Shown: in pieces, positions 8,429-45,171 of the stretch | Layout: every line of letters begins with the position of its first letter | Position numbering within the stretch: the stretch's first letter is position 1 | Position numbers and translations under genes: made by a program | DNA from: Entomortierella parvispora E1425 | Lineage: Eukaryota; Fungi; Mortierellomycota | Length of the DNA: 64,000 bases | Assembly (NCBI GenBank): GCA_020891255.1 | Contig: BQFW01000006.1 | Coordinates: forward strand, 1,612,001 to 1,676,000 | Direction of reading: 5' to 3' | Notes under the pieces: generated by a model | The model's input: the letters and a program-made list of their open reading frames with translations, nothing else | Databases searched by the model: none | What the model was told of the DNA's origin: nothing

Positions 8429-8496
8429 ACAGCATAACAAAAGAAAATAAATGCAGTATGTATGTACACTTTATTTTCGAGGGCGATCATTTGGAC

Positions 8497-9309
8497 TTAG
8501 AGCTTGGACTTGAGTTTATCGGCACCAAGAGCAAACTCGTCCCAGTTGGGCTTCTCTCGACTCGCGAAAGCGCCAATGCCATGGGCAGCTTCTTCGGACG
8601 CGATCATCTTGGCGAACGCTTCACGAACATATCCTGTGACTGCATGTGGGTTACCACCGCGGCTGTCGACAGTATCAACCAGTAGCTTCACGTCCCTCAT
8701 GGCTCCAGGACCGCCCAGAAGTAACAGATCGACATACTCTTGCACTTTTTTGTCAAGGCTCTCTTGATCCTCCGCCACGGCAGTAACGAATCCAACACGG
8801 TAAGCTTCTTGAGCCGAGACGCGTTCGCCAGAAAGCATGTACTGCTTGGAGCGGAAAGCGCCGAGCTGAGGGACAATAATCTCGGAGATCAGTGCCGGAA
8901 TCAATCCTCGGTGAACCTCGGGCATGCTAAAGTAGGCCGATGGGTGGACAATACGGAAGTTGCAAGAAAAAACGATACCGACACCGCCTCCCAAGGCAGG
9001 GCCGTTCATCCTGCAGACAGTGGGCTTGGGACTGCGAGACAGGGTCGTGAACATGGATAGGGTCGACGCAACGGGGTTCATAGCCGTAGGGGTATCATCC
9101 TGTGGAGTGAGGTCCATGCCAGTACAAAAGTATTTGCCGTTACCAGTGATAACAATCACTCTGACAGCGACGTCGTCGATCGCCGAGTTGAGAAAATCGA
9201 TAAGCTGGCTGACCATGGGACCCGAGAGCGCGTTTCCGCGCTTAGGTCTGTTCAAGGTGATGACCGCGGTTGCGCCTTGCTTGCTGTAAAGAATATCATT
9301 TTCAGACAT
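8497..9309 (-). CDS. Enoyl-CoA hydratase/crotonase of LiuC/AtuE (glutaconyl-CoA hydratase) type, with PTS1 (270 aa)
   Basis: Intronless. Motifs ITLNRPKRGNAL, FCTGMDL, GPALGGGVG and PEVHRGLIPALIS. Ends KLKSKL-stop and has no mitochondrial presequence. Confidence 0.9.
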   Translation of the reverse strand: MSENDILYSKQGATAVITLNRPKRGNALSGPMVSQLIDFLNSAIDDVAVRVIVITGNGKYFCTGMDLTPQDDTPTAMNPVASTLSMFTTLSRSPKPTVCRMNGPALGGGVGIVFSCNFRIVHPSAYFSMPEVHRGLIPALISEIIVPQLGAFRSKQYMLSGERVSAQEAYRVGFVTAVAEDQESLDKKVQEYVDLLLLGGPGAMRDVKLLVDTVDSRGGNPHAVTGYVREAFAKMIASEEAAHGIGAFASREKPNWDEFALGADKLKSKL

Positions 9310-10035
9310 TATGGAATTCTGGTTGCCGTGGAAGAAAAGATGAAGAGGCGGATGAAATGAATGAACGGATGGATGACCTGTGGGAATGGGACAATGCAAA
9401 CATGAACAGATGTTGGACACTTTACGCAGTGAGCGTTGGCGCCACGTGATACAGACTATTTCGCCACAATTGTCACTTCTCGGTCCGCAGGTTCCCTACT
9501 CAGGACCAAGCATAGAATGCTGTAGGTCAAATGGGTGGATGGAAGCCTGTACTTGTACCTGCAATGTGGACTCTTGAGAGGGGTAGATTCGATGTTGAAG
9601 AGGATTAGCCCAAGGTTGACGCGCTGCTAGCGCGGCGGGGTTGTTCACTTCGGGGCCAAAGGGCATGTTCGCTTCAAGGGCAAAGACAAGACGCGCCTGC
9701 TCTCGAGGTCACTTCCTTCCCCCCACACCTTCCCCCCACATCCCCAACGGCAGCCGCAACGAAGAGACAGTTCAGGACTCGCCGGCTCTGCAGGGCGCAC
9801 ATGGATGAGTGCGAATGAATCGCTCTGCCTGACTGCCCCCATGGAGTCGCGTCGTTCTCGCGGTGATCACGCGCGGGTGTCACTTTGTCCGCTCTCTGCT
9901 CAATCCATCCGCTCATCTCCACTCCCCCATTTCCTCCTTTACCCCTCTTGCATCTTTTTCTTCTTTTCTCTCCTTTCCTGTTCTTGCATCCATTCAGTTT
10001 TCCTCTTCTCCTCACAACCCTCCTCTCATTCTGCG

Positions 10036-12196
10036 ATGAGCCACATCATTGACCCTTCGCAGAGGAACCCACCTCCCAACCGCAGGGCGGTCGGGGATGA
10101 ATTCAGCTCCACTCAACCAAGCGTGGCTCCCCATCTCGGCCACCACTCCAAGCCCACAAAGTCAAAGATTAACACCAAGTCTCCAGAGTATATCGCCAAC
10201 TACAAGGAGATGTTGGAGATGGTCGATCAACTCAACGAGCGCCTCCAAGAAGCCACCTTCCAGGGAGCCGATCGATTGCTGGAGCTCCATCACAAGCGCG
10301 GCTCCATCCTCGGTAAGTATACCTGATCCGCACATTGCAGCAGCAGTTGCTGTTGGCGAGCCGAGCTATGCTTATTCATTATTCCTTTGCTGTTGTCTTT
10401 ACGTAGCTCGTGACCGCCTAGAGTTGCTTCTCGATGACGACTCTCCTTTTCTGGAGCTGTGCCCACTTGCCGGATACGGTCAAGACGACATGACGATCGG
10501 AGGATCCCAGGTTGCTGGTATCGGTTTGGTCTGGTAAGCTCCAGGTCCTTAAGTGCATATGCTTGCCAGCCCCAGCCGATGGGCTCCAGAACTAACCAGT
10601 CTTCGTTCTCTTCTATGATAGTGGTGTTGAGTGCATGGTTTCAGCCAATGTTCCAACTCTTCAGGGTGGTGCTTCCAACGCCACCACTCTTGCTCGCGGC
10701 GAGCGCCTCGGTCGTATTGCCTGGGAGAATCGCCTTCCTCACATTCAGCTCGTACAGTCTGTAAGTGCATGCAATAGCTAAGGCCGCGAGGGATTTCTGC
10801 GATAGTAGATCATGTCTCTGACCTACTATATTCTTTTCCACTCCTAGGCTGGAGCCAACCTGGCGCAGCAGTCCCGCGTGTTCCATCCTGGTGGGGCTGT
10901 CTTCCGTCACTTGGCAGAGAGGTAAAGCGAGAGTGTTTCTGAGCACTAAATGGAAATGTGAATTGTGGAGGAAATAGCAAGAGTAATTAACAGGCTGGTA
11001 TTTCAATGTAGATCAAAGGCAGGACTTCCTTCTGTTGCCGTCGTTTTCGGAAACTCAACTGCTGGAGGTGCCTATATCCCCGGCATGAGTGACTACAGCA
11101 TCTTGGTCAAGGTATGCAATTTTTTTTGTAAAATGACATCTGTTCCTTACGCTTTCAGTTGCTAACTCGACAATACTTTTGTCGGTTCTAGGGTAAAGCT
11201 CAAGTGTTCTTGGGCGGACCACCTCTGGTCAAGATGGCTACCGGTGAGATTACAGATGCCGAGACTTTAGGCGGAGCTGACATGCACAGTCGTAAATCCG
11301 GTGTGTCTGATCAGCTGGCTATGGATGAGTACCATGCCATTTCTATGGCTCGTGAGTTCGTCTCGGGATTGAACTGGACCAAGCAAGGCCAATTGCCCAT
11401 TCGCCATCTCAAGGGTCTTTTTGATCAGCCTCTCTACGACCCTGACGAGATTTTGGGTATCGTGAGCGCCAACATTCGTATCCCCTTCGATGCCATCGAG
11501 GTCATTATCCGTTTGGTGGATGGTTCTCGATTCACTCAGTTCAAGCCTCTATACGGACCCAATCTGATCTGTGGTTGGGCTACCATCCACGGTATCTCTG
11601 TCGGAATTCTCGCCAACAACAACGTGCTCTTCCCACCCGAAGCCAACAAGGCAACGCAGTTTATTCAGCTCTGCAACATGCGCGATACCCCAATCTTGTA
11701 CCTTCACAATATTACCGGATTCATGGTGGGCAAGAAGTACGAGGAAGAGGGTATCATCAAGGCTGGTTCTCGATTCATCAACGCTGTGTCCAATTCGCAG
11801 GTCCCATGCATTACGATTGTGATGGGTGCCAGTTACGGGGCTGGCAACTACGCCATGGCTGGACGTGCTTACAACCCCCGGTTCCTGTTCTCATGGCCCA
11901 ACAGTAAGTGCTCGGTCATGGGAGCAGAACAATTGACGGGAGTGCTTGACATTGTGATGCGTGACTCTGCCAAGAAGTCTGGCAAGGTCATTGACGAGGA
12001 GATGGCCAAGGCATCGATGGAGATGTTCCAGTCGATGGTCGAAAGCGAGTCGGATGTGTACTGGACCAGTTCGCGTTGCATCGATGACGGTGTGATTGAC
12101 CCCCGTGAGACACGTACGATCCTCGGCTTCTGTCTATCTGTGTGCTACAACACCCCAGTCAAGGGTGGTAACCTCTATGGAGTGTCCCGCATGTAA
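10036..12196 (+). CDS. Biotin-dependent acyl-CoA carboxylase, carboxyltransferase (beta) subunit, AtuC/AccD-like (573 aa), C-terminal SRM
   Basis: Six exons: 10036-10312, 10407-10533, 10622-10760, 10848-10921, 11012-11111 and 11192-12196. Motifs [42 protein letters not shown] and [16 protein letters not shown]. Ends GVSRM-stop. Confidence 0.93.
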
Positions 12197-43603: not shown

Positions 43604-43776
43604 ACGCTTCGGTCCAACACTCGATCCTTGCCGTCTGTCCCTGTTCTCTTTCACCGCGGTCGTCTCGTTTTTATACCTCCTTCTCTTTCCCTCCCTCTCC
43701 CTCTTCTCTTTTTTTTTCACTTCAGCTCCCTTCTGTCCCTTCCCTTCCTTCATCCTCATCTCTCCCATTCCTCACC

Positions 43777-45171
43777 ATGCCAGAGTACAAGTTCGAAACC
43801 CTCAAGGTCACATTCCCCGCCCCTTTCGTCGCCCATGTCGAACTCAACCGCCCCAAGAAGTTGAATGCCATCGACACAGCCATGTGGGCTGATATCCGCT
43901 CCGTCTTTGATACCCTTAGAGACGATCCCGAGGTCCGTGCCATCGTCCTCTCTGGATCCGGACGCTGCTTCACCAGCGGACTCGATTGTACGTTGAAACT
44001 TGACTGTTGTTTCAATGGTTCAATGGTTCAATCTCGTTGCACCGTTTAGGACGTGGGAACCGTCGGAACCGTCAGTTTCTGACCGGCCCTTCTTTTGCAC
44101 CATAGTGTTTTCCATGAACCTTCCTATTGTCGAGGATGATGCCTCTCGCACTGCCTTCAAGATTCGCCCCTACCTCAGAGTAAGATCAAATTGAAAAAAA
44201 GGGTCCCTTTCAGCTTCGGGTCAATCAATCAATTGGGGGGTTCTGATCTAGATGTGCTCGTTGTGTTTAGAACTTGCAAGCCTCCCTGAGTTCCATTGAG
44301 CTGTGCGACAAGGCCGTTGTTGCTGCGATCCACGGACCCTGCATCGGTGGTGGTATCGATATCACAACCGCCTGTGATATCCGTTATGCCTCCAAGGACG
44401 CTTACTTTTCTGTCAAGGTAAAGAGAACCTGACGCTTATTATTGTTCATGGAATGTACAGCAAACAAGTCCCTGACACGCGAGTTTTCCATGTATTATTT
44501 GGTTTATTAGGAGGTTGACATTGGTCTTGCTGCCGATGTTGGCACTCTCCAGCGCTTGCCCAAGGTTGTCGGTGACGGTAGCTGGGTTCGCGAGCTCTGC
44601 TTGACTGGTCGCAAGTAAGTCACTCTGCCCTCCGATCTGCCCGATCTGTCTGTAGTAGACCATGACTGCAGCCAATCTGATGATTTTTCCATTTTTCTTG
44701 AATAGTTTTGACGCCAAGGAGGCCTTGGAGCACGGCTTCATCTCCAAGCTGGTGGAGGACCCCGCCAAGGTTTTGGCCGAGGCCATTGCCACTGCCACAC
44801 TCATTGCTGAAAAGTCGCCCGTTGCGGCCATTGGCACCAAGTAAGAGAAAATCTCCCAGATTTCTTACATGAAACTCTCAAGTGGTACTAATGTTCCCTA
44901 TTTGCCTTTAATCTAGGCACCTGTTGAACTACTCTCGTGACCACGGTGTCCAAGAGGGTTTGGATTACACTGCGGCATGGAACATGGTCATGTTGACTAC
45001 ACCTGTAAGTGTTTTGATCTTCTCTGTGAGGTGGATTGGTTGAGCTTGCACTGCAGACTGTAGATACGACGCTGAACAACGCGTTTTTTTTACTTCACTG
45101 TGAAATAGGATCTTCCTGCAGCAGCAGCAGCGCACATGCAAAAGACCAAGGCTACGTTCGCCAAGTTGTAG
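43777..45171 (+). CDS. ECH1: Peroxisomal delta(3,5)-delta(2,4)-dienoyl-CoA isomerase
   Basis: Multi-exon. Motifs [37 protein letters not shown] and [21 protein letters not shown]. Ends FAKL-stop (PTS1). Confidence 0.93.

Follow-up and report, generated by a model that had tools for sequence, protein, structure and literature searches.

A divergent hydratase and carboxyltransferase gene pair

Eukaryotic biotin-dependent acyl-CoA carboxylases have been described in mitochondria, plastids, and the cytosol. What, then, is the role of a fungal carboxyltransferase (CT) that ends in a peroxisomal-type tripeptide and is encoded head to head with an enoyl-CoA hydratase that ends in another? The pair lies in a stretch of 64,000 nucleotides from Entomortierella parvispora E1425 (contig BQFW01000006.1, positions 1,612,001 to 1,676,000), hereafter called the window and numbered from its first letter. 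We analyzed the 2 proteins and their relatives and consider it probable that they are consecutive enzymes of a peroxisomal, biotin-dependent route that removes the beta-methyl group from 3-methyl-branched 2-enoyl-CoA esters.

The hydratase gene, of the crotonase fold, is a single exon on the minus strand, with an open reading frame (ORF) from the ATG at 9309 to the stop at 8497 (270 aa; Pfam ECH_1, 2.8e-39, residues 11-258). The CT gene, encoding the beta subunit of a biotin-dependent acyl-CoA carboxylase, runs on the plus strand from 10036 to 12196 (573 aa) in a model of 6 exons (10036-10312, 10407-10533, 10622-10760, 10848-10921, 11012-11111, and 11192-12196), with 5 introns of 80-94 nt, every one GT..AG; for exon 6, the Pfam match is Carboxyl_trans (1.7e-82). 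The hydratase translation ends in KSKL, including the canonical type 1 peroxisomal targeting signal (PTS1) SKL (8500-8508, minus strand), and the CT translation ends in GVSRM, including the PTS1-like tripeptide SRM (12185-12193, plus strand). A divergent intergenic region and putative bidirectional promoter (9310-10035, no strand) separates the genes by 726 bp from start codon to start codon. The ORF, the exon model, and the Pfam matches confirm the divergent arrangement that a sequence-only reading of this DNA had described, and all the motifs it quoted for the 2 proteins were found in the translations.

Distribution, phylogeny, and substrate pocket of the carboxyltransferase

Using exon 6 as the query against 5.8 billion proteins, we identified CT orthologues with 62-96% identity in Mortierellomycota, Mucoromycota, Glomeromycota, Chytridiomycota, Zoopagomycota, aphelids, 1 basidiomycete, Amoebozoa, and other protists. 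A search of representatives clustered at 50% identity added a CT from Exophiala (Ascomycota), and the nearest noneukaryotic sequences were bacterial, with approximately 56% identity. By these homology searches the CT system is pan-eukaryotic and cannot be taken as a feature of Mortierellaceae.

The maximum-likelihood CT tree of 98 rows, with which an earlier tree agrees, splits methylcrotonyl-CoA carboxylase (MCC) from non-MCC sequences with 100% support. The MCC clade contains bacterial CTs of classical Liu operons and eukaryotic mitochondrial MCCB, whereas the geranyl-CoA carboxylase (GCC) beta subunits similar to Protein Data Bank (PDB) entry 5ikl form their own group (100%) on the non-MCC side. 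The eukaryotic CT clade (96%) falls inside a 99% clade with the remaining bacterial CTs, many of them from AtuA contexts, and its sister group consists of Bacteroidota CTs (99%). The window CT shares 54-56% identity with AtuA-context and Bacteroidota CTs, 46% with Pseudomonas LiuB, 44% with the GCC-like protein P0240, and 42-44% with fungal mitochondrial MCCB.

MCC carries a 3-residue insertion ahead of Phe191 (PaMCC numbering); GCC lacks the insertion and has Gly162 (PaGCC numbering). GCC-type enzymes carboxylate 3-methylcrotonyl-CoA as well (Jurado et al. 2015, PMC4673880). The window CT loop VFHPGGAVF shows a 3-residue gap relative to all MCC structures in HMMER alignments to 8j4z, 3u9r, and others. 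Within its FHPGG core (10881-10895, plus strand), Gly196 (codon 10890-10892) aligns with PaGCC Gly162 and PaMCC Phe191, the register against 5ikl being fixed via P0240. The MCC-type FPDR[DE]HFG loop and the Phe191-type residue are both absent from the window CT, and the Gly and the short loop are kept throughout the whole eukaryotic clade. Because of the Gly at the Gly162 position and the missing insertion, the CT pocket is of the GCC type, though the CT is no AtuC orthologue. Judged by tree and alignment, the window CT is neither a mitochondrial MCCB nor an AtuC orthologue and belongs to a separate, eukaryote-wide clade. The earlier expectation that it would not group with mitochondrial MCCB is thus borne out at the fully supported MCC/non-MCC split. 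The label AtuC-like is apt for the GCC-type pocket signature and fails as a statement of orthology, with the CT clade lying apart from the 5ikl-like clade.

Runs X3, X4, and X5 over window positions 10135-12195 indicated that Mortierellaceae relatives have a second CT paralogue with approximately 83% DNA identity. It is marked by the peptide VVMVKEKAFMF and is apparently expressed in X5; a protein with this peptide (P0001) ends in SRM.

Bacterial relatives and their gene context

We examined 80 bacterial loci for gene context. The CTs adjoining HMG-CoA (3-hydroxy-3-methylglutaryl-CoA) lyase, in the order acyl-CoA dehydrogenase (ACAD), CT, enoyl-CoA hydratase (ECH), alpha subunit, and HMG-CoA lyase (HMGL), all had the FPDR[ED]HFG loop except that of locus L063, whose loop fits neither the MCC type nor the short-loop type. 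Nearly all CTs adjoining AtuA, typically in the order AtuA-ACAD-CT-alpha-ACAD-ECH, had a short F-x-x-GG loop, usually F[IV]PGG, and other operons had the order CT-alpha-ECH. The nearest bacterial kin of the eukaryotic CTs are found in AtuA-type contexts and not in Liu-type contexts.

One metagenome contig from ENA (L010, 7831-20360) carries an operon with a family-III CoA-transferase, a group-C CT, an alpha subunit, a hydratase, and a 3-hydroxyacyl-CoA dehydrogenase, along with alcohol dehydrogenases, a P450 with ferredoxin, an ACAD, and a MaoC dehydratase; from its gene content it looks like a full oxidation route for a branched hydrocarbon or alcohol. Among distant relatives of the window CT, P0255 (1,100 aa) is a single-chain fusion with the biotin-carboxylase motif ILVANRGEIA at its start and the CT from residue 611, and P0249 (1,153 aa) has a similar N-terminal motif before a CT that begins at residue 626. 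A third, P0341 (1,168 aa), has a long N-terminal part, followed by a CT with the short-loop signature.

Active site and placement of the hydratase

Orthologues of the hydratase were identified in the same eukaryotes as those of the CT, plus Thecamonas and 1 green alga, with 72-87% identity within Mortierellaceae. In the active-site block GGGVG...PE (8917-8991, minus strand), Gly111 stands at the position of the general base Glu144 of rat crotonase and Glu131 at that of Glu164, with a spacing of 20 residues. The same single-Glu pattern is present in Pseudomonas LiuC and in the AtuA-context hydratases. This arrangement is known from AtuE and Pseudomonas putida LiuC, where the extra carboxylate of the substrate is thought to stand in for the lost base, restricting these enzymes to carboxylated substrates (literature summarized in PMC13689101). 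A single-Glu site of this kind ties the hydratase mechanistically to a carboxylase.

The hydratase tree shows a 3-way split into a eukaryotic clade (100%), an AtuA-context clade (99%), and a LiuC clade (97%), whose branching order the tree does not give. A search of NCBIfam with the hydratase gave no match at the cut-off. AUH-type features are missing from the window protein, which has GGGVG instead of the GGGxE of enzymes with 2 catalytic Glu residues and lacks a presequence; further, AUH was not among its best 60 solved-structure matches, a comparison in which no AUH sequence was aligned directly. The Gly111/Glu131 site agrees with the earlier assignment of this protein to the LiuC/AtuE type and not to the AUH type.

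Targeting signals and N-termini

Approximately 59 of 62 eukaryotic-range hydratase homologues have PTS1-type ends (38 SKL, 13 AKL, 3 PKL, 3 ARL, 1 SRL, and 1 PRL), as do 111 of 120 CT homologues (96 SRM, 9 SRL, 4 ARM, 1 SRI, and 1 ARI). In contrast, no bacterial relative of either protein has such an end, and the bacterial CTs (the 80 loci and the nearest representatives) end in [FWY]R[MHLFP]. Both SKL and SRM conform to the PTS1 rule [SAC][KRH][LM] and are kept in orthologues, in support of the peroxisomal-type ends noted in the sequence-only reading.

The crotonase fold of the hydratase begins at residue 11, which leaves no space for a presequence. For the CT, we compared the number of residues before the RDRxxLLD motif, whose median is 66 in the eukaryotic CT clade, 56 in bacteria, and 96 in canonical MCCB. 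The first 20 positions commonly include acidic residues in the eukaryotic CT clade and mostly lack them in canonical MCCB, which is approximately 30 residues longer. The window CT itself has an extra N-terminus of 27 residues, common to 2 close relatives, with D6, D21, and E22. In length and charge the N-termini of the CT clade thus appear to resemble those of bacteria and to be unlike those of canonical MCCB. The fold start of the hydratase and the length and charge of the CT N-terminus are in line with the claim that neither protein has a mitochondrial presequence.

Linkage and partner genes in other genomes

The head-to-head pair recurs in Actinomortierella ambigua and in the basidiomycete Meredithblackwellia, with 185 bp between the genes, a hydratase ending in AKL, and a CT ending in SRM. 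In the chytrid Rhizoclosmatium, 4 kb separate the CT from the orthologous hydratase. The cluster of Exophiala dermatitidis (locus L007) is richer: it comprises a CT ending in ARM, an alpha subunit with biotin carboxylase and biotin carboxyl carrier protein domains and without PTS1, an AMP-forming CoA ligase ending in AKL, a Zn2Cys6 regulator, a major facilitator superfamily (MFS) transporter, and a single protein, also ending in AKL, that fuses an HMG-CoA-lyase domain to the orthologous hydratase domain. CT-hydratase linkage thus recurs in 4 fungal phyla and in bacterial operons.

A dedicated alpha subunit adjoins the CT in Exophiala and in bacteria, and none was found beside the CT in Actinomortierella, Mucor, Bifiguratus, Rhizoclosmatium, Balamuthia, Meredithblackwellia, or Lunasporangiospora. 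A homology search with the Exophiala alpha subunit returned relatives in Chaetothyriales, Penicillium, Aspergillus, Talaromyces, and others; only Dikarya were among the named matches listed, with no Mortierella alpha subunit. Canonical MCCB was also sought in early-diverging fungi through cluster look-ups and a protein atlas, and the sequences obtained came only from Basidiomycota, Ascomycota, algae, and animals.

The Chaetothyriales alpha subunits of the cluster type (L007 4038-6707, minus strand; P0418-P0445) carry the N-terminal motif RPPLFVAQLP just before the biotin carboxylase domain. We considered this motif as a type 2 peroxisomal targeting signal (PTS2), given its fit to R-x6-QL, and rejected it, the Gln being Pro in several species.

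Proposed pathway and alternative explanations

Families, pocket and active-site signatures, phylogeny, terminal tripeptides, and linkage are what was observed of the pair, and from these we infer a compartment, a substrate, partner subunits, and shared regulation. In the proposed route, the CT would serve as the beta subunit in an alpha/beta carboxylase and transfer CO2 from carboxybiotin to the gamma-methyl group of the substrate. Its wide GCC-type pocket should take isoprenoid-derived acyl-CoAs similar to geranyl-CoA and probably also 3-methylcrotonyl-CoA. The single-Glu hydratase would then hydrate the resulting substituted glutaconyl-CoA, with the new carboxylate serving as the missing general base, and an HMG-CoA-lyase-type enzyme encoded elsewhere would remove acetate or acetoacetate and allow ordinary peroxisomal beta-oxidation to go on. 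The hydratase would be imported into peroxisomes via SKL and the CT via SRM, and the alpha subunit, which is PTS1-less in Dikarya, may ride in with the CT.

Several observations weigh against this route, and they are best considered with the explanations they would favor. The hydratase tree does not separate a LiuC-like from an AtuE-like ancestry. Pfam searches on the 10 largest ORFs and tblastn found no alpha subunit, lyase, ligase, AtuA, or ACAD in the 64-kb window. With ligases found beside bacterial Liu clusters, the Exophiala ligase shares 43-48% identity, a hint of short-chain substrates, and the HMG-CoA-lyase half of the Exophiala fusion is 44-54% identical to genes in or beside such clusters. 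These last similarities would suit a pair that is simply a working MCC beta subunit and methylglutaconyl-CoA hydratase for leucine or isovalerate, possibly the only copies, moved out of mitochondria with the GCC pocket tolerated and not used. The activity of GCC-type enzymes on 3-methylcrotonyl-CoA would allow this, JGI/KEGG-style labels on several hydratase orthologues read methylglutaconyl-CoA hydratase or liuC, and the named canonical MCCB representatives that we retrieved from fungi are all from Basidiomycota, with none from Mortierellomycota or Mucoromycota. However, Exophiala and other Ascomycota, known holders of a mitochondrial MCC, keep the second system, the closest bacterial CTs sit beside AtuA and not in Liu operons, and retention of the Gly and short loop extends across the clade. 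We regard relocation of an ordinary leucine pathway as unlikely. Both the width of the pocket and the AtuA-type context of the bacterial kin favor larger, isoprenoid-derived substrates for the proposed route, and 3-methylcrotonyl-CoA is still in play because the Exophiala ligase and lyase are Liu-like and GCC acts on methylcrotonyl-CoA. A single enzyme set could serve both kinds of substrate.

The compartment of the CT raises a different doubt. The -RM of its SRM end is, by comparison of termini, inherited from bacteria, with Ser or Ala at -3 as the eukaryote-specific change, and its targeting signal therefore rests on a single residue. Bacterial beta subunits of MCC and GCC also conserve the C-terminal pattern G-V-x-R-M, so a structural role is probable, and the C-terminus may be buried in the hexamer, out of the reach of Pex5. 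If so, the hydratase alone would be peroxisomal, and the SRM of a cytosolic carboxylase would be an inherited structural end, leaving the 2 enzymes in different compartments. Ends in -RM, -RF, and -RL occur family-wide in bacteria (ARF in PaGCC, SRF in P0240), P0262, whose origin was not established, ends in ARL, few basic residues precede the SRM of the CT, and none of the Dikarya alpha subunits ends in a PTS1. In contrast, the residue at -3 is F, W, or Y in the sister bacterial loci and S or A in 111 of 120 eukaryotic relatives, the -1 position of the eukaryotic CTs varies among L, M, and I in line with the PTS1 rule, and the partner enzymes carry strong PTS1s. Further, a hydratase that needs a carboxylated product would be stranded without the carboxylase. 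Taken together, a split between compartments seems to us improbable. It is more improbable still, to the point that we give it very little weight, that the adjacency is coincidental, with the crotonase an auxiliary enzyme of beta-oxidation and the CT engaged in an unrelated carboxylation or decarboxylation. The conserved 2-gene cluster that the sequence-only reading expected holds in part: linkage was found in Actinomortierella, Meredithblackwellia, Rhizoclosmatium, and Exophiala, whereas the genes are not adjacent in Lunasporangiospora, Mucor, Bifiguratus, and Balamuthia, as coincidence would allow. Yet the linkage is seen repeatedly, in bacterial operons as well as in 4 fungal phyla, the single-Glu site suggests carboxylated substrates, and the Exophiala hydratase is fused to the lyase within a carboxylase cluster.

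The consecutive action of the 2 enzymes in peroxisomal beta-methyl removal remains the explanation that we prefer. As a broader and more tentative proposal, the pair could descend from an ancestral eukaryotic peroxisomal system of a GCC-type alpha/beta carboxylase, a single-Glu hydratase, and an HMG-CoA-lyase-type enzyme that strips 3-methyl branches from isoprenoid-derived acyl-CoAs by carboxylation. Such a system would survive today in most phyla of fungi, in Amoebozoa, and in other protists, with the alpha subunit carried piggy-back on the SRM-tagged beta subunit.

Gene models, the intergenic region, and a neighboring gene

The Dissophora protein P0003 (573 aa) is 90% identical to the window CT over its full length. 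In run X5, from a relative with approximately 88% identity, intron-less contigs skip CT introns 1-3 exactly at the borders of the model (junctions 10311/10406, 10532/10621, and 10760/10848). A transcript-like X5 contig over the hydratase covers 8461-9315 and continues beyond it, past the start codon, and a transcript-like CT contig of the same relative extends back to 9690. These contigs support splicing only and say nothing on regulation; a look for RNA runs of the organism itself turned up none. Both genes were also found together on single genomic contigs in 2 relatives.

The window has in-frame ATGs at 9805 and 9841, and no stop codon intervenes between them and the CT start at 10036. The extension from these upstream ATGs would add 77 aa, Arg/Ser-rich and then very hydrophobic, and a contig of the relative has 82 letters in place of the window's 89 across 9936-10026. 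The stretch 9805-10035 is probably 5' untranslated region and not coding because the underlying DNA is rich in C and T and the length difference in the relative is not divisible by 3.

We identified no CCTCGG site in the 726-bp intergenic region, and no conserved promoter motif was established there. Two adjacent CGGN3TNA half-sites are present at 9861 and 9874 (9861-9882; CGGTGATCA and CGGGTGTCA), which we take, as a weak resemblance, to be like yeast oleate-response half-sites. The whole 64-kb window contains 45 such half-sites, and the intergenic pair is not meaningfully above expectation. Elsewhere in the window, a second crotonase-family gene, with introns, lies at 43774-45000 (plus strand) and is presumably of the dienoyl-CoA-isomerase (ECH1/Dci1) type.

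Novelty and implications

In animals, 3-methyl-branched acyl chains are degraded by alpha-oxidation. If the proposed route is correct, it would offer peroxisomes an alternative for 3-methyl-branched acyl-CoAs that are isoprenoid, phytol-like, or leucine-derived, and its carboxylase would be the first biotin enzyme assigned to this compartment. HMG-CoA lyase occurs in peroxisomes too in some organisms, and the pathway would suggest a reason for its presence there. The chemistry is known from bacteria and mitochondria; the novelty lies in the clade of eukaryotic sequences, the compartment predicted for them, and the arrangement of the genes.

A full-text literature search gave no description of a peroxisomal biotin carboxylase or carboxyltransferase, a peroxisomal methylglutaconyl-CoA hydratase, or a fungal GCC-like pathway, in agreement with the earlier remark that no fungal example had been characterized. 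One published account goes no further than to record "acyl-CoA carboxylases" in fungi and some green algae. The route would give a function to a widely conserved and routinely misannotated family, whose members are now labeled as beta subunits of MCC, propionyl-CoA carboxylase (PCC), or acetyl-CoA carboxylase (ACC), or as plain enoyl-CoA hydratase. The Ascomycota cluster would be a tractable system, represented by Exophiala, the sole locus inspected, and by Aspergillus and Penicillium through alpha-subunit homology. There may also be a bearing on terpenoid catabolism and on the engineering of oleaginous Mortierella.

Comparison with known systems

Among solved structures, the top matches of the window CT are MCC beta subunits (human MCCB, 8j4z, and P. 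aeruginosa LiuB, 3u9r; E 3.9e-104 on exon 6), which have the same fold and the same N-terminal helix typical of MCC and GCC; the folds of these two are too similar to be told apart by structure prediction, and how exposed the C-terminus is depends on the hexamer. The MCC beta subunits differ from the window CT in having Phe191 with the 3-residue insertion, an FRM end, and, in eukaryotes, a mitochondrial presequence. The beta subunit of Pseudomonas GCC, AtuC (PDB 5ikl; PMC4673880), is closer in kind: it lies on the non-MCC side, has Gly at position 162 without the insertion, and, as part of an alpha/beta holoenzyme, carboxylates the gamma carbon of 3-methyl-2-enoyl-CoA. However, the window CT is only 44% identical to the 5ikl-like protein, falls in a separate clade, has introns and the SRM end, and has no AtuA or AtuD nearby. 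Closest outside eukaryotes, at the 54-56% identity given above, are the uncharacterized CTs of AtuA-ACAD-CT-alpha-ACAD-ECH clusters in Actinomycetota, Bacteroidota, Myxococcota, and Acidobacteriota, which have in common with it the motif [EQ]S[AG]GA[DN]L and a short GG loop, mostly F[IV]PGG and FNYGG in the Bacteroidota nearest to eukaryotes. Their genes lie near those for an alpha subunit and a single-Glu hydratase; their [FWY]R[MHLP] ends and their operons with AtuA set them apart from the window CT.

The window hydratase has its counterparts in LiuC (the methylglutaconyl-CoA hydratase of P. putida) and AtuE (P. aeruginosa, PDB 4zu2), which likewise have Gly in place of the general-base Glu, keep 1 Glu, and act after the carboxylase; it differs in its identity of 28-35% to them, its distinct eukaryotic clade, and its C-terminal PTS1. 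In the E. dermatitidis cluster, the CT is 49% identical to the window CT, and the hydratase domain is 36% identical to the window hydratase with the same motifs. Exophiala has the hydratase-lyase fusion, the clustered alpha subunit, the PTS1-bearing ligase, the regulator, and the transporter, whereas the window has the adjacent pair alone.

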